Part shown: piece after piece, positions 3,416 through 49,298 of the stretch
Position numbering within the stretch: position 1 is the stretch's first letter
Layout of the letters: each line of letters begins with the position of its first letter
NCBI GenBank assembly: GCA_002269645.1
Contig: NIVC01003239.1
Location: 45,470 to 109,469, forward strand
Length of the DNA: 64,000 nt
Direction: 5' to 3'
Origin: Macrostomum lignano
Lineage: Eukaryota
The notes under the pieces: model-generated
Told to the model about the DNA's origin: nothing
Databases searched by the model: none
Seen by the model: the letters and a program-made list of their open reading frames with translations, nothing else
Position numbers and translations under genes: made by a program

Positions 3416-4485
3416 TCAGTTAATTTTATTTTCTACCTTTGTAGGAGCCTGTGGTTGATTTTGTTCGCCTGAGCTCGACGAGACTGACTGCGTTTCACCG
3501 AGATGAAGGTTAAAACGAACTGTAAAAGAAGATTCAAACCACTAATTGACGAGAAATATAGAAAGGTTCATCATAGAGCTGAGCTGACGAAAGCGGATTC
3601 GATGGCTGAGTAAGCTGAAATTCGTGAGAGAGGCAATGACAGATCAATAACAGAAGCGGTCTCGGACCACGGAGGCAGGGAAGGTCCAGGAGAATATTTC
3701 GTAGAAAAAATAAGAAGATTAAGCCATCATCTGCGTGAACGAAAAGATGAAAGTCGGTAAAATGATTGGCTTATCATATGATTGCTCACCAACTCATTCA
3801 GTATAATAGGACTGGTGTAGTCAAATCAATTTAATTTCAGTTTCAGTAACTTTTGTCGTTATTAAAAATGCCCTTCAACTTCTTGTAGGCTCGTACTCGG
3901 ATGACCTTTTTTAACTAATGGAATCTTACGTTTGTTAACATGTATTTGAAGCATACATTTTGACCTAAATTAGTTTTAATGAGTTTACAGTTAGTATTTG
4001 ATATGATTCGGTATTTTTTTTCAAAATGCTTTATTTTCATTCACCTTCTTGTATTCACGCGACGCAACTAACTAATGCGATCGTACATTTGTTTAACCCG
4101 ATTAACCTGATTAGTAATGCTAAATAAATTGGTTTGAATTTGGGATATTTTCATTAAATGACGTCGTAACGCTTTTATCTGTTCTTTTTGAGAATTTCTG
4201 TTTTAATTAGTTCAAAAGAACAGTTTAAAGCAATAAATTTTCTACAACGAAAGAGGTCTAACTAAACCAACTGTTTTTTTGCGGTCCACCTAACCCGGTC
4301 CCCAAAACGTAGTTAGTGAACCACCACAGTTTCCCCGAACTGGCTATTCCGTCAAGTTAACAAAAAGATAACCCTAGCTAGCCTTTCGCGTTGTCAAAAC
4401 AGACTCTATTTTTTAACCGGAATTGCGTGGTCCACATAACGCATTAACATAACTCAGGTCCCGCTAAACACACAGACAGTCGTAA

Positions 4486-4551: not shown

Positions 4552-8169
<3,618 letters not shown>

Positions 8170-11315: not shown

Positions 11316-13431
11316 ATGCTGGTGTCGCCTGACAAGGCTTTGCCGGGCCGCGCAACCCCCATGCGCGTCTCTAACGTCCACGCCGTGCTGAAGGGCAACA
11401 GCGCTGTGCCGCCGTTTCCGCCTGACACACTCAGCATCGTGTTCGGCCTCGGCTGCTACTGGGGCGCAGAGCGCCTGTTCTGGCGCATGAAGGGCGTTTA
11501 TTCTACGCAGGTGATTGACAGAATCCAATAATTCAATAGCAATATTACAATATTGTTAACCGGGAAGCCCGCGTGAATGCTTGCCCTGTTTATTTCAATG
11601 TCCTTTCCGCAGTCTTTGTGCTTATCAACAGGTAGTTGTACCAATCAGTGCACCCTCTCTCTGCCTCCAAGATCTTTGTGTCTGTCAGCTGGCCCTGCAC
11701 ACCGCAGCCTCTCCTGGGTCTTTGTGTCTGTCAGCTGGCCCTGCACACCACAGCCTCTCCTGGGTCTTTGTGTCTGTCAGCTGGCCCTGCACACCACAGC
11801 CTCTCCTGGGTCTTTGTGTCTGTCAGCTGGCCCAGCACACCGCAGCCACTCCTGGGTCTTTGTGTCTGTCAGCTGGCCCAGCACACCGCAGCTTCTCCTG
11901 GGTCTTTGTGTCTGTCAGCTGGCCCAGCACACCGCAGCTTCTCCTGGGTCTTTGTGTGTCAGCTGGCCCAGCACACCGCAGCTTCTCCTGGGTCTTTGTG
12001 TGTCAGCTGGCCCAGCACACCGCAGCCTCTCCTGGGTCTTTGTGTCTGTCAGCTGGCCCAGCACACCGCAGCCACTCCTGGGTCTTTGTGTCTGTCAGCT
12101 GGCCCAGCACACCGCAGCTTCTCCTGGGTCTTTGTGTGTCAGCTGGCCCAGCACACCGCAGCCTCTCCTGGGTCTTTGTGTGTCAGCTGGCCCAGCACAC
12201 CGCAGCTTCTCCTGGGTCTTTGTGTGTCAGCTGGCCCAGCACACCGCAGCCTCTTCTGGGTCTTTGTGTCTGTCAGCTGGCGTAGCACACCGCAGCTTCT
12301 CCTGGGTCTTTGTGTCTGTCAGCTGGCCCAGCACACCGCAGCCTCTCCTGGGTCTTTGTGTCTGTCAGCTGGCCCAGCACACCGCAGCCTCTCCTGGGTC
12401 TTTGTGTCGGGCGTCTGGCCTAGCACACTATGTTCACAACTCTTTCCTGAGTCTATCAGTCACTGAGTCTTCACTTCTCTGCTCGCGCCCCCTCACAACT
12501 CCGCAGGTGGGATTCGCTGGCGGCTTCACTCCCAATCCCACTTATAAGGAGGTGTGCAGCGGCCGCACCGGCCACGCCGAAGTGGTTCGAGTTGTGTACC
12601 GGCCCGCCGAGCTTCCGCTGACTGGCCTGCTCAAGGCCTTCTGGGAGAGCCACGATCCAACTCAGGTGAGCAGCTAATGGGAACGGCGCTGTTTGCTGGT
12701 AATTACCTGCTCATGCACTAATGAAGGAAGAAGGATATATGAAGGATATATGAAGTGTCGGAGATATGAAGTGTCGGAGATATGAAGTGTCGGAGATATG
12801 AAGTGTCGGAGATATGAACTGTCGGAGGTATGAAATGTCGAATATATGAAGTGTCGGAGATGTGAAGTGTCGGAGATATGATATGTCGAAGATATGAAGT
12901 GTCGGAGATATGAAGTGTCGGAGATATGAAGTGTCGGAGATATGGAGTGTCGGAGATGTGAAGTGTCGGAGATGTGAAGTGTCGGAGATATGAAGTGTCG
13001 GAGATATGGAGTGTCGGAGATATGAAGTTTCGGATATATGGAGTGTCGGTTGGAGTTGGGAAGGATGTTGGGACAGAACTATATTGTCGCGAGAGTCAGA
13101 CACGTCAACGCTGAGCTGCTCTGCCCCTCCCCCCAACCAGGGCATGCGGCAGGGCAACGATGTCGGCACGCAATACCGGTCCGCCATCTACTACTCGGCA
13201 TCGGATTCGGCCGAGGCGCAGCTGGTTGCTGAGTCGGCCAGAGCTTACTCCGAGGCTTTGGTAGCCAAGGCTAAACTGCCGCCCGGCGGCTCTGTGACCA
13301 CCGAGATTGCGCCGCTGAAGGAGTTCTATTATGCCGAGGACGAGCACCAGCAGTACCTGCACAAGCATCCCGACGGCTACTGCGGACTGCGAGGCACCGG
13401 GGTGGCCTGCCCAGCGCTGCCCGGAAAATAG
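11316..13431 (+). CDS. MSRA: Peptide methionine sulfoxide reductase A
   Basis: Exons 11316-11510, 12507-12665 and 13141-13431, all phase 0. The true start may be upstream, since the frame is open from 11130. Motifs: [83 protein letters not shown]. Confidence 0.97.
11673..12408. repeat. 46-bp (44-bp variant) minisatellite in MsrA intron 1
   Basis: Unit gtctttgtgtctgtcagctggcccagcacaccgcagcttctcctgg, about 16 copies. Confidence 0.95.
12739..13046. repeat. 16-bp minisatellite in MsrA intron 2
   Basis: Unit gagatatgaagtgtcg, about 19 copies. Confidence 0.95.
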
Positions 13432-18389: not shown

Positions 18390-21300
18390 ATGCCTAAAGG
18401 CAAAAAAGGCGGCGGCAAGAAGGGAAAGAAGGGCGGCAAAAAGTCCAAGAAGGCCAAGGAACCCGGCATGACGCCAGCTGAGGCCATCTGGGACTACAAG
18501 ATCAAGCTGCAGGAGCGGGAGCTGGAGGAGATCGCGTTTCAGGTGAGACCTGGCTTGTCTCCGGCAACTCCACTTGGTGCAGAGCACTAATCTAGTGACA
18601 GTGACTAGACACTAACCTAGTGACAGTGACTAGACACTAACCTAGTGACAGTGACTAGACACTAATCTAGTGACAGTGACTAGACACTAACCTAGTGACA
18701 GTGACTAGACACTAATCTAGTGACAGTGAGTAGACACTAACCTAGTGACAGTGACTAAACACTAACCTAGTGACAGTGACTAGACACTAACCTAGTGACA
18801 GTGACTAGACACTAATCTAGTGACAGTGACAAGACACTAATCTAGTGACAGTGACTAGACACTAATCTAGTGACAGTGACTAGCCACTAATCTAGTGACA
18901 GTGACTAGCCACTAATCTAGTGACAGTGACTTGCCACTAACCTAGTGACAGTGACTAGACACTAACCTAGTGACAGTGACTAGCCACTAATCTACTGACA
19001 GTGACTAGTATAGCCACTAATCTACTGACAGTGACTAGTATAGCCACTAATCTACTGACAGTGACTAGTATAGCCACTAATCTAGTGACAGTGACTAGTA
19101 TAGCCACTAATCTACTGACAGTGACTAGTATAGCCACTAATCTACTGACAGTGACTAGTATAGCCACTAATCTACTGACAGTGACTAGTATAGCCACTAA
19201 TCTAGTGACAGCGTACTCACATTAACAGTAATCAATCCCGCATTCAAAACGCAAAGGTAAAAGGCCAGCTGGAGATGAAGGAGCGGAACCAGGAACGGAA
19301 CAAGCGTCTGGCTGAGGAGCGCGAGGCGTACATGAATATGCTGCTGAAGCGGCTGCAAGAGCAGGAGAAAAAGGACTCGGAGCACTTTACTGACCGGCCC
19401 AAGGTGGTGGCGGCTATGCAAGAGAACTGGCGACTGGAGCAGCAGGTGATCAGTGGCCAGATTGTTAGCCAGATTATCACACATCATTAGCCAGATTATC
19501 ACACATCATTAGCCAGATTATCACACATCATTAGCCAGATTATCACACATCATTAGCCAGATTATCACACATCATCAGCCAGATTATCACACATCATTAG
19601 CCAGATTATCACCCATCATTAGCCAGACAATCAGGCTCAATTAGCCAGGCAACCAGGCTCAATTAGCCAGACAACCAGGCTCAATTAGCCAGACAACCGG
19701 CTCAATTAGCCAGACAACCAGGCTCAATTAGCCAGACAACCAGGCTCAATTAGCCAGACAACCAGGCTCAATTAGCCAGACAACCGGCTCAATCAGCCTC
19801 GCCCGGCTTTCCCAGGAGCGGGAGGAGATCCGCAGCCTCCGCCAGGAGATCGAGCAGACCATAGCGGACACGGCAGCCACCAGGTCCGAGATTGAAACCT
19901 GGCGAGAGTTTCGCGACCGCGGCCAGCTGGAGCAGCAGACCAGCATCCGGCTGCTGCGCCAGGAGGTGCGCGACATCGACGAGACGTTTAAGTCCATGTG
20001 CGAGTACTTGGACAGGAAGACACGGCAGGACCGGGACCGCATCCAGACCACCACTGACACGGCGCTGGAGGAACAGAAGAGTCGGGCCACGGATACTGCG
20101 GTGCAGCAGCTGGACAAGAATACTAAGCAGGTCAGATTAGCAATCCATTCTATTCCTTAATAATCCTTGTTGGTCAGATTAGCAATCCATTCTATTCCTT
20201 AATAATCCATGTTGGCTAGATTAGCAATCCATTCTATTCCTTAATAATCCATGTTGGCTAGATTAGCCATCCATTCTATTCCTTAATAATCCATGTTGGC
20301 TAGATTAGCCATCCATTCTATTCCTTAATAATTCATGTTGGCTAGATTAGCAATCCATTCTATTCCTTAATAATCCTTGTTGGCTAGATTAGCCATCCAT
20401 TCTATTCCTTAATAATCCTTGTTGGCTAGATTAGCCATCCATTCTATTCCTTAATAATCCATGTTGGCTAGATTAGCAATCCATTCTATTCCTTAATAAT
20501 CCATGTTGGCTAGATTAGCAATCCATTCTATTCCTTAATAATCCATGTTGGCTAGATTAGCAATCCATTCTATTCCTTAATAATCCATGTTGGCTAGATT
20601 AGCAATCCATTCTATTCCTTAATAATCCATGTTGGCTAGATTAGCAATCCATTCTATTCCTTAATAATCCATGTTGGCTAGATTAGCAATCCATTCTATT
20701 CCTTAATAATCCTTGTTGGCTAGATTAGCCATCCATTCTATTCCTTAATAATCCTTGTTGGCTAGATTAGCCATCCATTCTATTCCTTAATAATCCATGT
20801 TGGCTAGATTAGCAATCCATTCTATTCCTTAATAATCCATGTTGGCTAGATTAGCAATCCATTCTATTCCTTAATAATCCTTGTTGGCTAGATTAGCCAT
20901 CCATTCTATTCCTTAATAATCCATGTTGGCTAGATTAGCAATCCATTCTATTCCTTAATAATCCATGTTGGCTAGATTAGCAATCCATTCTATTCCTTAA
21001 TAATCCATGTTGGCTAGATTAGCAATCCACTTATCTGCTAAGTGTAAAGCTACACGGGCTAGAGCTGCAGTGAATTAAAAAATACTCGGAACCATCACTG
21101 ATGCGATCCGCTGAACTCCACCGCACTCGCTGACCCCCGCCCGTCGGCATCACCCAGGAGCTTGTGGACAACAGCTGGTTGAAAGAAGAGGCTGAGACCC
21201 ACCGGGCCGAGATGGAACGGGTGCTGGCCCAGGTGGAGGACCTGGAGCGTCGCAATCTGCGAATCATGGCCGACCTGTTTGAGTGCCGGGTCCAGGACCT

Positions 21301-22548: not shown

Positions 22549-23307
22549 ATGCCATGGACATGCGTGCACGGATGCACGAACTGGCAGATCATTCGAATTT
22601 TGCGCTGTAGGCTTGAGAGATAGGAACAGAAATTTCACCAGAAACTTTGCAATTGCTTTCCTGGTCTTCGGGTCAGCATGCCGTGAAAAAATAACATGAG
22701 AAACTTTTTAGAGCGACTCAGAAAAAGCAAATGCCTGCAGAATGAAAGCTTCCACATTTTGCCTCCAGTGAAATTCGCAAGATTTCGAGTGCAAAGTCCT
22801 GCTTTAGCTCGCCAGCTCGTAGTTTGTTTTACTTTTATGCTCCCAATTTACAGCAAGCATCACTGGGGGATTCTCAATTCAAATCCATGGATGATCAGAC
22901 AATATTTTAGTGCTATTGATATTGCATAGTATACGAGCGTATATATAGCGCTTTTTGTTTTAATGTGATTTGTACAAACATTTACGCTCCTACATGTACA
23001 TGCGTGCAAGGTTTATAAGAAAGTCGAGGATAAGCGCCTTGTACTTTAGGTTTCGACATTAACACGCGAATATTTTTTCCTATTTTATAATATTGAAATA
23101 TGCATGATTTGCATATGCTATGTCTAGCTTTTTAAGCCTGCGATTACACGCACAGATTGCTACTGTTAGTAGGATATTATTTGAAATAATATGAGCGTAA
23201 TTCTTTTTCAGTGAATCATCTCTAACCGGTTTGTTCACAATCCAAATGCATCCTGTTATAACGATTGCTTTACATGTAGCTTGCATCATACAGCCTTTCA
23301 CCAAGGA

Positions 23308-23690
23308 CCACTGTATAGTAAAACAGGACGTAAAACTTGTAGATCGTGTAATTTTTTAGGAGGCCGATTTCCTGCAAAAAATACACTGCGGAGATAGGAA
23401 AAATTAATTTTTTTATCACAGAATCAATAGAGGGTCAGTGAAGATTACCAATACTTTAATTTAGCGTGCACATGTTAACTCTGTTGTATTTTACATTTTA
23501 TATTTATATTTTAAAGTTAGTGAAAGTATTATTTTCATTAACATGTTGTGCATGCTAAATTGAAGGAATGGAAATCTTCACTCCCCAGATCTAACGCAAT
23601 GATTAATTTTGTGATGAAAAATAATTAATTATTCCTAACTTCGCAGTGTATTTTATTCAGGAGTTTTACGTCCTGCTATGTTAACAGTGG
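23308..23690. mobile_element. Putative MITE with CACTG-type termini
   Basis: ccactgtatagtaaaacaggacgtaaaact at the left versus agttttacgtcctgctatgttaacagtgg at the right (inverted, 14-bp perfect core). No TSD seen. Confidence 0.5.
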
Positions 23691-25510: not shown

Positions 25511-26857
25511 TCAGTCCGCAATCTGATAAACCATGTAAGCGAAGTCGCCTGCCTCGATGCCCTGCCGCTCCTCCGGCCGGGGGTTGTAGCCGGCGAAGCC
25601 GAGGAAAAGAAGCGTCTTGAGCAGAGCGTCTGCAATTCCGGTTATATAGCTCTGGTGCTCAACTACTGTTAGAGGCTTAATCCGATCATTTAAGTGGTAG
25701 CTTAGAGATTAAGTAATCTTCTAATCCCTGTAGCATAGAGATCAGGTAATCTGCTAATCCTTGTAGCTTAGAGATTAAGTAATCTTCTAATCCTTGTAGC
25801 ATAGAGATTAGGTAATCTGCTAATCCTTGTAGCTTAGAGATTAAGTAATCTTCTAATCCTTGTAGCATAGAGATTAGGTAATCTGCTAATCCTTGTAGCT
25901 TAGAGATTAAGTAATCTTCTAATCCTTGTAGCTTAGAGATTAGGTAATCTGCTAATCCTTGTAGCTTAGAGATTAAGTAATCTTCTAATCCTTGTAGCTT
26001 AGAGATTAGGTAATCTGCTAATCATTGTAGCTTAGAGATTAAGTAATCTTCTAATCCTTGTAGCTTAGAGATTAGGTAATCTGCTAATCCTTGTAGCTTA
26101 GAGACTAAGTAATCTTCTAATCCTTGTAGCTTAGAGATTAGGTAATCTGCTAATCTTTGTGGCTTAGAGATTAGGTAATTTCCTAATCCTTGTAGCTTAG
26201 AGATTAGGTAATTTCCTAATCCTTGTAGCTTAGACATTAGGTAATCTGCTAATCTTTGTGGCTTATAGATTGATATATCTGCTAATCCCTGTAATTCAAA
26301 TATGACACATGCCAATCTCTGTGATAGCTTGGAAGCTCTGAATCCCGCTAATTTTCCAGCTTCGTACGAGTAGTTATTCGATTTTATGGTGTCTGAGAGC
26401 TGTTTGATGTTAGATTTGAAATGTGAAAACCGAAGCTGCATATAATAGATGCTGACTGACTCACCTTTATCCTGCCTTCGCCGACTTACACCCAGCAGCA
26501 CACGGTCGCACTGGAGCTCCTCTTCAGCAAACTCCAGCATGTCCGTCAGCTGCTGCTTCAGCCGCTCGCCCAGCTGGTCGCCCTCGGTGACGAACAGCGC
26601 CATTGTCTGGCGCTGGCCAGCACCGGGTAGCAACGTGTAAGCGAGTGGCTGACCGCCCACCCCGACCGCAAATCCAGATTGACGGCCGGCATAAGCAGAC
26701 GACTCTTGGCTAACATGGGTGACAGGGGGCTTGTCGAGTGCCCCCAGGCCGCTGCCCTCTGTCAACTGTGCGCTGACTGTGGCGGCCCGGGGAGCATCAA
26801 AAACCCTGCGAAGGCCCGGCAGGCGGACGGGAGCAAAAATCGCTCAGTTCACTATTC
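25511..26857 (-). CDS. OAZ: Ornithine decarboxylase antizyme, decoded by +1 ribosomal frameshift; first exon uncertain
   Basis: Exon 26857-26465 carries the ORF1 end (NSELSDFCSRPPAGPSQGF, TTT TGA at 26802-26797) and ORF2 in the +1 frame (DAPRAA...DMLEFAEEELQCDRVLL). Exon 25629-25511 encodes DALLKTLLFLGF...AYMVYQIAD*. Splice phases agree. Candidate AATAAA at 25315-25310. Confidence 0.93.
25700..26290. repeat. 33-bp minisatellite (antizyme last intron)
   Basis: Unit gcttagagattaggtaatctgctaatccttgta; two variants alternate in part of the array. Confidence 0.94.
26720..26802 (-). promoter_or_regulatory. Antizyme +1 frameshift site (UUU-UGA) with predicted 3' RNA pseudoknot
   Basis: Stem 1: 26795-26782 pairs with 26752-26740 (13 bp, 2 GU, 1 bulge). 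Stem 2: 26764-26754 pairs with 26730-26720 (10 of 11 bp). Pairings read by eye. Confidence 0.8.
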
Positions 26858-27189
26858 CTGCGGGTTGGATATTTGAGATGCACTATTTGTTATAACTTAT
26901 TAGATAATAAGTGCATTGGATTATACAGTCTACTAATAGTCTTATCTATGGCGTTTGAGAAAGTCCTTACAAAGGCAGTACCTAATGTACCTAATGTAAT
27001 AACTTTAAATTTAAAAACATTTCATTTTTGCGGATGCACTTAAGAAAATCATTTTTAGTATTGTGGATGGATAATTATCAAATATGCCTGCATTACAAAA
27101 TTCGATATTGGCAATCATATTTGACACTATCTTTTGGTTTTTTATTTTAGAAGCGTCAAATGAATGAAGCATAATGTCGAACATAAAGG

Positions 27190-27597
27190 ACTCATTGGGG
27201 AATTTGCTAAGATGTCTAGGCTTGGGTGGGGGAATTGCTGAGATGTCAAAGCTTATTGGATTGGGAGAGTTTTTAAGATGTTAAGGCTTGGGGGGGATTG
27301 CTAAGATGTCAAGGCTTTGTGGGAATTGCTGAGATGTCAAGGCTTGGGGGGATTGCTGAGATGTCAAGGCCTTTTGGGAATTGCTGAGATGTCAAGGCTT
27401 GGGGGGGGGATTGCTGAGATGTCAAGGCCTTTTGGGAATTGCTGAGATGGCAAGGCTTGGGGGGATTGCTGAGATGTCAAGGCCTTTTGGGAATTGCTGA
27501 GATGTCAAGGCTTGGGGGGGGGGATTGCTGAGATGGCAAGGCTTTGTGGGAATTGCTGAGATGGCAAGGCTTGGGGGGATTGCTAAGATGTCAAAGC
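27190..27597. repeat. ~30-bp minisatellite with variable G run
   Basis: Unit gggaattgctgagatgtcaaggctt(g)n, about 13 copies. Confidence 0.9.
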
Positions 27598-30378
27598 TGA
27601 GGTCAGAAGCTATATGCAGTTTATTGAAAACAAATTTTTTTACATTTTTATTGGCTCCCTGATGGGGGATGCTGATTGCTATTCAATAATATTTGTATGC
27701 ACTGTTAGATCAATAAGGTTGACAAAGTGCAAGGTAGAGTTAAAATTAGCATTGTTTAATAGTAGAGGTCATACAAGATTTCAATCTCAGCATTATTTGA
27801 GATTTAGACCTTTTTCTTGATCAAATCTTGATTTAAAAAGTGCCAAGAATCTAAGATACAAAAAAGTAAACTAAAACCCCTAGGCTAGATACCAATATAT
27901 TGAATAAAGTAAAAACATATATCTACTAGACACCAATATAAACACATTGACTTTTAACTGATTCAAACTAGTGCCAAAAATCCAATCCATTTTAGTATCA
28001 CCAATATTAAGGGATTTAGCCATACTTTGGAAAAATGGGCATATTCTAAAAACTTCTATACTTTTTTAACAAGTTTAAGGTTTTGCTATTTAACAGAAAT
28101 GTACAAAGTTTATTTTTATTTTCAAATATAAAATGTTGTATAAATACAACTGTTATTTTTATTTTTTAGCTTTGAATTATTTAAATTAAATATCTGAATT
28201 ACTATAGTCTAGCAGTAAAATTTCAAAATTGATAATGCAAAGTGGAAAAAATGAAGCTAAATATTTAATTCATATTTGGTATAAATTGGCATATACCAAA
28301 ATAGTTTTTTCTCTAGGGTACTTTGTCCTTGGTCCTTTGAACTATTGGGTTTATACAAGTTGCAAAATAATAAAGTCTAAAATCTTGAAGTCTCAATTGT
28401 ATTGCATTGTCAAACAATATTGAATCTTGAAACTCTCAAAAATTTTACTTTGTCAGATCCCTATTTAATATTTGGCTATAAATTGCCTACTATTCTAAGG
28501 ATATGCTGCTTAATGATTGGCAAGAGCTTAGAGCTTTGCAATACTAAAAAATAAAAAATAAAAAAGATAGAAATAATGGCATTAAGAAAATAAAATAGAA
28601 AAAGCAAAACTAAATAAGAAACTAAAGGAGAATAAAAATAATATACATAGTAAAAGGAACAAACTAAGTTACAAAAAACATCAGATAAGCTGTAAAACTA
28701 AGTTGCACAGATGCTAATATTATAATTTTAGAGGCTATATATATGGGTGCTAATAGAGATTCACTATAGATAATTTTGCCAAAGGTTAATTCAATATCAA
28801 TCTAGTCAAACTCAGTCACAATAAAGGAAGACCTGTGCATAATCTTATCAATTCTTTTAATATAATGATATTAGTCAATATACTAGCTAATTAGAGCTGG
28901 CTGCCAGCATCCAGAATAATTTTATTGCTCCCCCTTTAAGTGGGGCCCAGTGAGTTTTCTTATCAGTTGGCTCTGGTACAATAATTGAAATTGGCTGTGA
29001 AGTTTCTCCCTAATAAAATTTGCATTGAAAAAGCCCATTTTAAACAGTTTTTCAAATATTTAATCCTTTTAGCATTGAAGCAGATACAAGAAATTTTAAC
29101 CATCTTCTTTCCAGAGGATTTTGCATTTTTTGGCGAAAATATGATCAAAATCAGCCACGAATTGCAATCTGTAAAGTGTTATGGACAAATATACGAACCT
29201 TAAAAGATTTAGTATATTTAGATTTATTAAATTTTTCTTTTAGGCTTTTAATTGAGTTTGTTCTATCGATTATTTATCATGTACTTGATCCAAATGGCTA
29301 TCTAAGAAATGTGTTCTTTCTTGAAGGTCAGCATAAAAATTTATTTTGATTGAATGCATTTTTTCTATCAAAGGTCATGAGCTTTAGTATAAAGAGGTTT
29401 AGTTATATAGAGATTACTTCATTTCTTTCATACTTCTTTTGCTAAGCATTTGCTTTGCTAATAAGCATTCTAAAAAACTTTACATGTAATTTGCTTTAAC
29501 TTGTAAAGATTCCAAAAGTGCCAAAAGTGCATTCCAAAAGTGCATTTTCTGTCAAAATTGAAATTTGGTACTTTCCAAAATTAAAATTTTCCTTAATTGA
29601 AATTCAGAAAAACCTTTTTTAGTATGACTAACACTCACTTTTTCACTTTTGATTTACAGCTCATGCAAAACAAAAAATGTACTAATATATATAACATAAC
29701 TTCATATATTTTAGCCACTACATAAATTCCTCATTGCCATTGAATTCAAATACTTTTTTCTATAAAATCCAGTTATTCCTTGCTATTAGATAGAAGCATA
29801 CCTATAATGTGGTATAGTAAGGTACTAAATAATAGGATAAGGCAAGGACTATATAAAGAATAGACATTTAACTCTCTTTTCTATACATGACATTTTCTTT
29901 TGCTCTCAATTGCTTCTACATATATTATCACTTGATGTATGGTAATGTACACTAAATAGCAATAATTGCAATTGTGTAAACCATACATGCATCTTTGTAC
30001 TATAATATGAGCAAAATATGCAATATATTAGGCAAACACTTTTATAGCTCTTTCAAGTTTTGCAAAATTTACAAAAATTTACAGTTCCACAAACATGCTA
30101 TAAACATTTTTATCAAATTCATAATATTCATAAGACAGTAATAAAGTTCTAAGAATATAAAAATTACATGAAAAATTTCAGAACTAAACACTTAAATTTG
30201 TTTACATTAAATTTGCTATCAAAATTAATTGTTGCCAAATTTGCCTATATCCATGCCAATCTTGTGGAGGCCCTTTTGAGGAAAATTCCCATGCACAAAG
30301 GCTTTAAAAAAATCTGTGCCATCTACAGAGTGGCACATAGCCATTTTCATCAACATGTAGCTATGCATTTAGTGTGCA

Positions 30379-47500: not shown

Positions 47501-49298
47501 TGCCATATAATCTCTCACCCTCCCCTCTGTTCGCATGCTCAAGGCCTAAGCCAGGGAGGCCTCCTCCTTCGCGAAATGAAAACAGAAAAAGCTTTTGAAG
47601 GGGGGAGAGGTAGGGGATGAAGATGAATCGAAAGAGCTTTGCTGACGGAAGCATCTTTTCCGGCTTCCCGCCCGAATATGCATTTGGCCGTACTGCATGC
47701 GCCTTATAGATAAGACTGCTTCGGATTGCACTCAAAATCCAAATTCCTATAGTGCAAGCTACCTAGGAAATTGCATGCAAGGGGTACGGACACCCTGATT
47801 CCACCGCCTCTGCTGGACAACAGGATTAGTATTGACCGAGATTTTTCTAGTAAAAGCACAGCAGGACGACAATGCTATTCGCAAAAAATTAGAAATTAAA
47901 AAAACCGTTTAAAGAAGACAAACTTATAGTTTAGCTTGTGTTGCCGATGGTCATCTAAGCTGAGAAAGTTATGCGCCAATCGCTAATCAAACAAGCGTCA
48001 AACTGGGTGGACAAGGAAGATATATTTAACAAAGTCTTTGTTTTGATTCGTTACTTCCGTGTTCTATCAGTGGTGCTAGGCTCACAGGCTACGTACACGG
48101 GCACAGCACTCACGCAGAGTTTATAGACTTCCATGACACACGTACACTTCTAGTGTGCCTTTATAATATGCACCTCACTGGACCTTGATCACACTCACCT
48201 GTACTTGTGCACGTGCGGTCCCCGACGCTTGTCCTTGGCGTTGTGATAGAATGGACAGGCGTAGCCCTGACGGCACATTCGCGGCGGCTTGCGGCACTGC
48301 TCGGTTTTGTAGTTGGCCAGCACATAGCCCATGTCGTTCCATTTGGGATCTTCGGACAGGACACGCTCTTTCTCCAGGCTGGCCGGCAAGTTCACAGGAC
48401 AGTCGGCGGCCTCTTGAACTTCGCGGATGTCGTAAACAGGCACGCGCAGATCGTTGGCGCCGTGAGCAAAGGCGCAGTGGGCACCATTTCGTGAGCAGTG
48501 ACCTCGGGCGTCCGTGTCGTGAATGCAGGTGCCGGTTTTAAAGTAGCGCAGATGGTAGCGCCTCTCAGTGTCGCCGGCATTTCGGTGCAGGTAGGGACAA
48601 GCGTCGGCGTTGGGGCACTCCCCTCGGGTCTCGTCGTACTTGTCGCAATACACATCAGGCGAATAAGTGAAAGTTCCGTCCGCTTTGCGCAATGGGCGAC
48701 GCCGGCGCTGATTTGGAAAATGCCAATGAAAGCAGGTGAACGGCTTATGCTGCGTGCACTTATGATTCGCAAACAGTGGGCACTGCTGAGTGCGGAAGTC
48801 GCGGAGATAACTGCAATTTGTCAGAAAAAATAAAAAATTAGTAAAGATCCACATATTGGTATGCATGATACAACATTTACAAAGGTTTGGAACAATTGGA
48901 ACTGCACATTGCAAAAAGTAGTGCAAAAATTTGTTAAAACAAAACGAAAAGTCTCTATGGTAATAAAAATAAATTTATAGCATTTTGTCTCTCAATTATT
49001 TTTTAAAACTACTATCAAAATACTTTTAACAGAAACTATTCTGCCCCTGACAAATATATGAAAAAGTTAAAAAAAATGTGAATTAATTTTTGTTTCAATG
49101 TAGCTTAAACATTTGTTTATATTCTTTATCTAATTTTACTCACAAAACTAATTAAAATGTTAAATGTTAAAACAATATAAAAGCTCAGCCATTAAATCAG
49201 AAAGTAAATCCATAATTATAGATAAGCAAAACAGCAAAATAATGAATTTAAACTGAGACTTACTTTAAATGTTGTGGTTTTACAAAAACAGTTGGCAT
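41535..49298 (-). CDS. UNK: Unkempt CCCH zinc-finger RNA-binding protein
   Basis: Phase-consistent exons 49298-49264, 48810-48199, 46489-46372, 46183-45874, 44723-44296, 42587-42216 and 41945-41535. Motifs KPQHLNYLRDFRTQQC, FTCFHWHFPNQRRRRP, YHLRYFKTGTC, YKTEQCRKPPRMCRQGYACPFYHN and CHTRTEQQFHPEIYKSTKCND, followed by a poly-Q linker and coiled coil. Confidence 0.96.
43086..44262. repeat. 18-bp minisatellite (unkempt intron 5)
   Basis: Unit gatgccagctacagaggg, about 65 copies with an internal block duplication. Confidence 0.96.
44829..45592 (+). mobile_element. tRNA-derived SINE copy 2, interrupted by a MITE
   Basis: Full tRNA-like head (A box, ttggactcacgactcaa arm, B box ggttcgatt). Body resumes at 45367 and matches copy 1. 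Confidence 0.87.
44917..45366. mobile_element. 450-bp hAT-type MITE
   Basis: 12-bp perfect TIR TAGGGATTGCAA. 8-bp TSD TTTGTGTC at 44909-44916 and 45367-45374. Subterminal atcccgg repeats. Confidence 0.93.

Follow-up and report, generated by a model that had tools for sequence, protein, structure and literature searches.

The minus strand of the 64,000-nt stretch of DNA analysed here (the window) contains, close to nt 26,800, the end of an open reading frame (ORF) at UUU UGA, a second ORF in the +1 frame, and, directly downstream, a sequence able to fold into a pseudoknot. This raises the question of whether the locus encodes an ornithine decarboxylase antizyme produced by +1 frameshifting, and whether the pseudoknot belongs to that event. 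Among cellular examples of regulated recoding, antizyme frameshifting is the classic one, and an ORF1 closed by UGA followed by a functional ORF2 in the +1 frame is the layout of every antizyme gene. The answer favoured here, to which we assign a probability of roughly 0.9, combines three elements in one joint reading: the gene encodes an antizyme, ribosomes shift by +1 at UUU-UGA, and a class II(a) invertebrate pseudoknot acts as the 3′ stimulator. Its core (antizyme, +1 shift, H-type pseudoknot) is accepted because of domain matches, gene structure, comparison with an orthologue, and covariation.

The minus strand reads ...GCC GGG CCU UCG CAG GGU UUU UGA U GCU CCC CGG..., with five T residues at nt 26803-26799. 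As stated in the original prediction, which was made from the letters of the window, skipping of one U gives GAU GCU CCC (D-A-P); the +1 frame then reads DAPRAATVSAQLTEGSGLGALDKPPVTHV... and remains open to the GTGAGT donor at nt 26464. The ORF2 frame is already open upstream of the site, continues as DAPRAA..., and lacks a start codon near the junction. The features of the gene are the following.

26797 to 26857, minus strand: 3′ part of ORF1 (..NSELSDFCSRPPAGPSQGF, then the stop), with a similar ORF1-frame peptide in Macrostomum lignano (..STELENFCSRTSAGPGWRF, then the stop)
26812 to 26817, minus strand: 5′ motif GGGCCU, positions -18 to -13 from the stop
26797 to 26802, minus strand: shift site UUU-UGA, with UUU (26802-26800) in the P site and UGA (26799-26797) as the stop; the same in three M. 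lignano loci
26465 to 26857, minus strand: antizyme exon, running from the final part of ORF1 through the shift site and the pseudoknot to codon 111 of ORF2; the same boundaries and phases in M. lignano
26858/26857 and 26465/26464, minus strand: acceptor (cag/G) and donor (AAAG/GTGAGT), respectively, of the shift-site exon
25630 to 26464, minus strand: intron, GT..AG, with the acceptor ttgcag/AC into the last exon
25511 to 25629, minus strand: last antizyme exon (..DALLKTLLFLGFAGYNPRPEERQGIEAGDFAYMVYQIAD, then the stop), stop TGA at 25513-25511

The spliced ORF2 matched the Pfam family ODC_AZ (PF02100) with 51.2 bits (cut-off 24.2) over profile positions 24-113 of 114, and the shift-site exon alone scored 27 bits. 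Among PDB sequences, the ORF2 product matched antizyme 1 (OAZ1; 4ZGZ, 1ZO0 and others) with E = 3e-7. The closest protein was the antizyme of M. lignano (UniProt A0A1I8HZZ7; loci NIVC01001635.1, NIVC01000082.1, and NIVC01000083.1 of GCA_002269645.1), which shared 53% identity, and no other protein came close; the exon junction 26464/25629 has the same boundaries and phase as in the M. lignano gene. These findings indicate that the minus-strand locus is the ornithine decarboxylase antizyme gene of a macrostomid flatworm. The intron at nt 25630-26464 is mostly filled by a tandem repeat of 18 copies of 33 nt (nt 25697-26293, 89% matches).

Between the acceptor at nt 26857 and the shift site no in-frame AUG was present, and ORF1 must therefore start on an upstream exon. 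The possibility of an AUG supplied by a spliced leader was rejected, since no AG acceptor in the window would set a leader-borne AUG in the ORF1 frame.

A stop homologous to that of ORF1 was present in all 66 relatives examined, and every one of the 62 metagenome or metatranscriptome antizyme loci with a recognisable site requires a +1 shift at this stop. In the window the frame changes exactly at a homopolymer run, and the T5 run of this locus is known from genomic DNA alone; the extra T might accordingly be ascribed to an assembly error, to a pseudogene, or to transcriptional slippage on T5. However, the same run is found in three separate M. lignano loci, relatives with UCC, GUU, AUU, or CUU before UGA have no homopolymer and yet need the +1 shift there, and ORF2 shows no disruption, its splice sites being canonical and its ODC_AZ match full. 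An artefact or a non-ribosomal origin of the frame change is thus hardly credible.

The sequence following the stop can be divided into the arms and loops of an H-type pseudoknot.

26782 to 26795, minus strand: stem 1 5′ arm GCUCCCCGGGCCGC
26765 to 26781, minus strand: loop 1, 17 nt, holding the 5′ strand GUCAGC (26777-26772) of an inner hairpin
26754 to 26764, minus strand: stem 2 5′ arm UGACAGAGGGC, of which the first 4 nt double as the 3′ strand GUUGAC (26766-26761) of the inner hairpin
26753, minus strand: hinge A, the only nucleotide separating the 5′ arm of stem 2 from the 3′ arm of stem 1
26740 to 26752, minus strand: stem 1 3′ arm GCGGCCUGGGGGC
26731 to 26739, minus strand: loop 3, 9 nt
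26720 to 26730, minus strand: stem 2 3′ arm GCCCCCUGUCA

The total span of 76 nt, the loops of 17, 1, and 9 nt, and the pairing of stem 2 at 10 of 11 positions (the mismatch being A26758/C26726) were all found where they had been placed by the original prediction. Stem 1, which had been given as 13 bp, was confirmed in position and arms, although not as a clean run of 13: it comprises 12 contiguous pairs (U26793-C26782 with G26752-G26741) plus 1 to 3 outer pairs requiring a bulge, and it begins 1 nt (bulged variant) or 3 nt past the UGA.

Comparison with M. lignano separated the conserved parts of this element from the variable ones. In the three M. lignano loci, the shift site GUUUUUGAU including the T5 run, the exon boundaries, and the splice phases are the same as in the window, and the sequences of stem 1, stem 2, and hinge are identical to those of the window. 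A 5′ GCCGGGCCU block and the inner loop-1 hairpin are also common to both. In contrast, loop 1 of M. lignano has 23 nt versus 17 in the window and is largely different, loop 3 differs at 6 of 10 positions, and about 60 residues of the M. lignano protein are absent from the middle of the protein of the window. Among codons for identical residues, 15 of 15 were the same where the third base lies in a stem, as against 35 of 71 elsewhere (Fisher p = 1e-4). Such freezing of synonymous stem sites indicates selection on the RNA beyond that on the protein.

A blastn comparison of the whole locus with M. lignano returned the two antizyme exons (81% and 74% identity) and a shared repeat family (about 77%), and nothing else. 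Alpha-adaptin, the neighbour of the antizyme gene in the M. lignano loci, had no blastn match in the window, and synteny was thus without support. Because of the 53% protein identity, the divergence of loops and synonymous sites, and the lack of an alpha-adaptin match, the copy in the window appears to belong to a related but different flatworm or to be a deep paralogue, and not to be one of those loci. In the public annotation of M. lignano (L001 to L003, 6001-6911 / 6001-7300), the gene is represented by an 88-residue C-terminal antizyme fragment named "hypothetical protein", which lacks ORF1 and the greater part of ORF2 as well as the frameshift.

A total of 71 antizyme-encoding contigs and several transcripts came from searches with profiles and a single metagenome scan. 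Among the 62 metagenome loci whose shift site could be recognised, 38 contained the pseudoknot; adding the window, M. lignano, and three further loci gives 43 carriers, 33 of them distinct. The architecture therefore recurs in 41 antizyme sequences (31 distinct) beyond the window and M. lignano, at shift sites that include UCC, GUU, AUU, and CUU. Its register is fixed in the 43 carriers, the 5′ arm of stem 1 ending 15 nt past the stop. The 5′ arm of stem 2 ends in ..CAGAGGGC and is followed by one hinge base, the hinge being 1 nt long in 33/33 distinct carriers (A in 32, G in one), and the 3′ arm of stem 2 begins 22 nt downstream of the point where that of stem 1 starts, with one exception that is short of a codon. 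Loop 1, on the other hand, varies from 8 to 41 nt in relatives. Within stem 1, a CCC/GGG block is invariant among carriers, and the variants CCCCGGGCCGC/GCGGCCUGGGG, CCCCACGCCGU/GCGGUGUGGGG, CCCGCGCAAG/CUUGCGCGGG, and CCCCCAAACUGC/GUGGUUUGGGG were observed in relatives. In the alignment of carriers designated A3, changes on both sides were seen in 13 pairs (9 of 12 in stem 1 and 4 of 11 in stem 2), and none of 500 shuffles attained the observed pairing and compensatory values. Covariation in relatives, named as a check when the element was predicted, was thus found, and the proposal of an H-type pseudoknot behind an antizyme UUU-UGA was upheld by it together with the identity in the orthologue. 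The M. lignano comparison, the synonymous sites, and the wider survey agree in indicating that the pseudoknot is real.

Since the stems lie within coding sequence and the peptide motifs are kept in relatives, it could be argued that the encoded peptide (DAPRAA..LTEGSGLG..PPVT), as protein or as nascent chain, explains the conservation and that the pairing of the RNA is a by-product; in fungal antizymes, a nascent peptide is known to act as a stimulator (PMC4505036). However, paired positions co-vary in ways that alter the amino acids (CCGGGCCGC/GCGGCCUGG versus CCAAACUGC/GUGGUUUGG and CGCGCAAG/CUUGCGCG), the synonymous stem positions are frozen as described above, and the loops separating the conserved blocks are free in both length and sequence. 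These observations make an explanation by the peptide very improbable.

The two stems do not contribute equally to this evidence. Stem 1 bears most of the covariation and most of the estimated stability (-26.6 kcal/mol as a duplex), and stem 1 alone has been suggested as the stimulator in Priapulus caudatus and Rhodnius prolixus, lineages reported to have kept no other stem (PMC1874602); by the same token, stem 1 alone might stimulate here and stem 2 might be dispensable. Yet stem 2 is intact in the window and identical in M. lignano, synonymous positions included; its 7-bp core is kept in 33/33 distinct carriers, the three distal pairs being formed in 13 to 16 of the 33; and four of its pairs show compensatory changes. 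In oyster, moreover, disruption of stem 2 was equivalent to deletion of the pseudoknot and abolished stimulation (PMC1874602). A dispensable stem 2 is therefore improbable, and the complete pseudoknot is retained as the stimulator in the reading preferred here.

Much of this arrangement has precedents. The UUU-UGA site has been listed for M. lignano, Priapulida, fungi, and protists (Ivanov & Atkins 2007, PMC1874602), with UUU and AUU, not UCC, given for Platyhelminthes in Table 1 of that work, and UUU sites were judged independent in origin across phyla. The class II invertebrate pseudoknot, first described, according to PMC1874602, by Ivanov et al. in 2004 (J Mol Biol), differs from the vertebrate class I, has a loop 1 that sometimes exceeds 35 nt and a span that can exceed 90 nt, and is known from five phyla, Platyhelminthes among them (PMC1874602). 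Class IIa has a hinge of a single nucleotide and class IIb one of 4-14 nt, and the identity of stem 1 matters for class II, not for class I (PMC1874602). The original prediction, which regarded UUU-UGA as a nematode feature and its presence here as a separate or little-studied case, was in this respect mistaken, and its doubt as to whether such a pseudoknot had been described is settled by the same source. Both the UUU-UGA site of M. lignano and the class II pseudoknot of Platyhelminthes were already known by 2007, and the window provides a further example.

Like class IIa pseudoknots, the type of which is that of Crassostrea gigas, the element lies directly 3′ of the ORF1 stop, is bigger than the vertebrate class I pseudoknot (76 nt versus about 60), and combines a long G+C-rich stem 1 (12-14 bp) with a 1-nt hinge and a loop 1 that is large and variable; it differs in that the P-site codon is UUU instead of UCC and the proximal hexamer CAGGGU instead of UGGUGY. 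With a start close to the stop, a 1-nt hinge, a large loop 1 and long span, and compensatory changes in both stems, the element can be assigned to the class II(a) invertebrate antizyme pseudoknots. The class I pseudoknot of vertebrate antizymes 1 and 2 is likewise H-type, lies a few nt 3′ of the UGA, has a one-nucleotide hinge, and is a polyamine-dependent +1 stimulator (PMC1874602), whereas it spans about 60 nt, has short loops, and is unrelated to the window in stem sequence. Antizymes of the Caenorhabditis clade of nematodes share the UUU P-site codon and the UGA, but they are without the 5′ module B and have a module E of their own (PMC1874602), while the window retains GGGCCU. A scan of nt 26000-27500 with Rfam models at E <= 10 gave matches at chance level only and no antizyme family; the model of the vertebrate class I pseudoknot, Antizyme_FSE (RF00381), thus had no match.

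The motif GGGCCU was present in the same register in 38 of the 43 pseudoknot carriers and in 17 of 24 non-carriers. Of the 5′ stimulatory modules known from antizymes (PMC1874602), A, B, and D are expected beside a class IIa pseudoknot; the motif probably belongs to these modules, presumably as part of module B. The P-site codon among the carriers was GUU in 19, AUU in 5, CUU in 2, UUU in 2, and UCC in 15, while UCC without a pseudoknot occurred in 23. Thus every NUU-UGA antizyme in the sample bears the pseudoknot, and UCC-UGA antizymes are split into 15 with and 23 without it. This association may be due to phylogeny, to sampling bias from the LLEFAEEEL search pattern, or to a real dependence of NUU sites on the pseudoknot. 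CUU-UGA sites were seen in two unrelated antizyme mRNAs, as UGU CUU UGA G (L004:160-260, also L005 to L009, Logan transcripts) and GGG CUU UGA U (L082:290-400, JGI Ga0314685_10014366), with the same pseudoknot 3′ of each; a text search of the literature found no later report of CUU-UGA as an antizyme shift site.

Starting from what was observed at this locus (the identity of the gene, its layout in two frames, and pairings that are conserved and covary), the following course of events can be proposed. When UUU, bound by tRNA-Phe, occupies the P site and UGA, which is decoded slowly, the A site, some ribosomes would advance by one base; U26799 would be passed over, or else serve as the third base of a UUU re-paired in the +1 frame. 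The U5 run would let tRNA-Phe re-pair perfectly with the +1 UUU, to judge by the sequence and by what is generally known of +1 shifts. Translation of ORF2 by the shifted ribosomes, resumed at GAU (DAP...), would then yield the functional antizyme. As in other antizymes, the shifted fraction may rise with the polyamine level, and the pseudoknot may act as the 3′ stimulator, this role being carried over from the family.

Several points weigh against this reading. The gene and its frameshift are known here from genomic DNA alone, and the exon carrying the ORF1 AUG was not found: among phase-compatible ATG..GT candidates up to 13 kb upstream, comparison with M. lignano gave no credible pair. The class IIa membership rests on the published description and on the relatives. 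In alignment A3, 83% of cells pair, compared with 39-53% when partners are slid by 1-3 columns; the former figure is inflated by anchoring on AGAGGG, by a filter of at least 8 of 10 stem-1 pairs, and by excision of loop 1; anchoring and filtering cannot, however, generate compensatory changes. Geometric scans found loose pseudoknot-like geometry at dozens of other places in the repeat-rich window, in tandem and inverted repeats; at the stringency of the antizyme element three to four other arrangements remain. Geometry in the window alone gives no useful chance statistic, and the element is taken to be more than chance because it is placed directly after the shift-site stop and is conserved in relatives. 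Finally, the duplex energies of stem 1 (given above), stem 2 (-16.0 kcal/mol), the stem 2 core (-6.9 kcal/mol), and the inner hairpin (which adds about -8 kcal/mol) are crude estimates that are not pseudoknot-aware, and they leave the balance between the stem 2 and inner-hairpin conformers undecided. As to the scans themselves, a tandem repeat of about 25 nt with internal inverted symmetry (GATTAGTGGCTAGTCACTGTCACTA...), at nt 18590-19000, gives rise to many spurious stem and pseudoknot-like matches.

The inner hairpin had led the original prediction to suggest a two-state switch. In such an element, the loop-1 hairpin GUCAGC/GUUGAC would sequester the first 4-6 nt of the stem 2 5′ strand, and the RNA would toggle between the full pseudoknot and a form with stem 1, the inner hairpin, and a stem 2 core of at most 5 bp, thereby tuning the frameshift, perhaps in response to polyamines. 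That a competing hairpin exists and recurs in relatives was confirmed. It is part of the nested minimum-free-energy fold (-39.1 kcal/mol, z = -2.4 versus dinucleotide shuffles), and a hairpin of 5-9 bp abutting or overlapping the stem 2 5′ strand was found in 29 of 33 distinct relatives. Against shuffled versions of loop 1, p was 0.004 in the window, compared with 0.009 in M. lignano and 0.006 in L004. The two strands change together, as in UGUCG/CGACA of L019, UGCCA/UGGCA of L033, CUGUG/CACAG of L053, and UUGGG/CCCAG of the GUU-UGA group, and the limited occurrence of the three distal stem-2 pairs noted above would also suit a switch. However, the signal was lost when the peptide was fixed and synonymous codons were resampled (combined p = 0.07; window p = 0.22), so that the switch is weakly supported, the hairpin being inseparable from conservation of the peptide (..VS..LTEG..). 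Moreover, its geometry varies by lineage, the choice of the 5′ strand as the best match in each sequence is circular, L025 and L018 lack the hairpin, and the proposal builds on predicted pairings alone. A two-state element in the window is thus unlikely. The wider proposition, that selection maintains the loop-1 hairpin in class IIa pseudoknots all the way from flatworms to crustacean-like lineages and that a balance of two conformers sets the +1 level or senses polyamines in doing so, is somewhat more doubtful still. The loop-1 hairpin appears to be recurrent and of uncertain meaning, and the switch remains unproven.

In the window (nt 26761-26777, minus strand) and in most relatives, a short segment of loop 1 (e.g. 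UGUCA, CUGUG, CUUCU) repeats the distal part of the stem 2 3′ arm. Being the same short sequence, the loop-1 segment and the distal part of the 3′ arm have identical potential partners in the 5′ arm of stem 2.

Around the gene, a tandem repeat whose periods of 28, 55, and 113 nt are nested occupies nt 27276-27598, about 420 nt upstream of the antizyme exon. Exon-sized ORFs at nt 11577-12677 (plus strand) and 48195-48926 (minus strand) encode a domain of peptide methionine sulfoxide reductase and three CCCH zinc fingers of the unkempt type; they are ordinary animal genes flanking the antizyme gene, and they mark the window as animal nuclear DNA. A repeat family common to nt 23291-23662 of the window and to M. 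lignano (L001:3079-3262 and 4232-4444), with 75-79% identity and in both orientations, is probably a transposon or a miniature inverted-repeat transposable element (MITE), and it speaks for the window being of macrostomid origin.

A correct call at this locus matters mainly for annotation, as gene finders overlook the antizyme frameshift, the 88-residue fragment annotated in M. lignano being an instance. The window adds a second macrostomid sequence, showing that synonymous sites, too, are frozen within the stems, in contrast to the drifting loops, and the survey exceeds the 29 sequences cited in 2007 for the invertebrate pseudoknot. The known mechanism is left unchanged; only the recurrent loop-1 hairpin that competes with distal stem 2, if shown to be selected, would be new.

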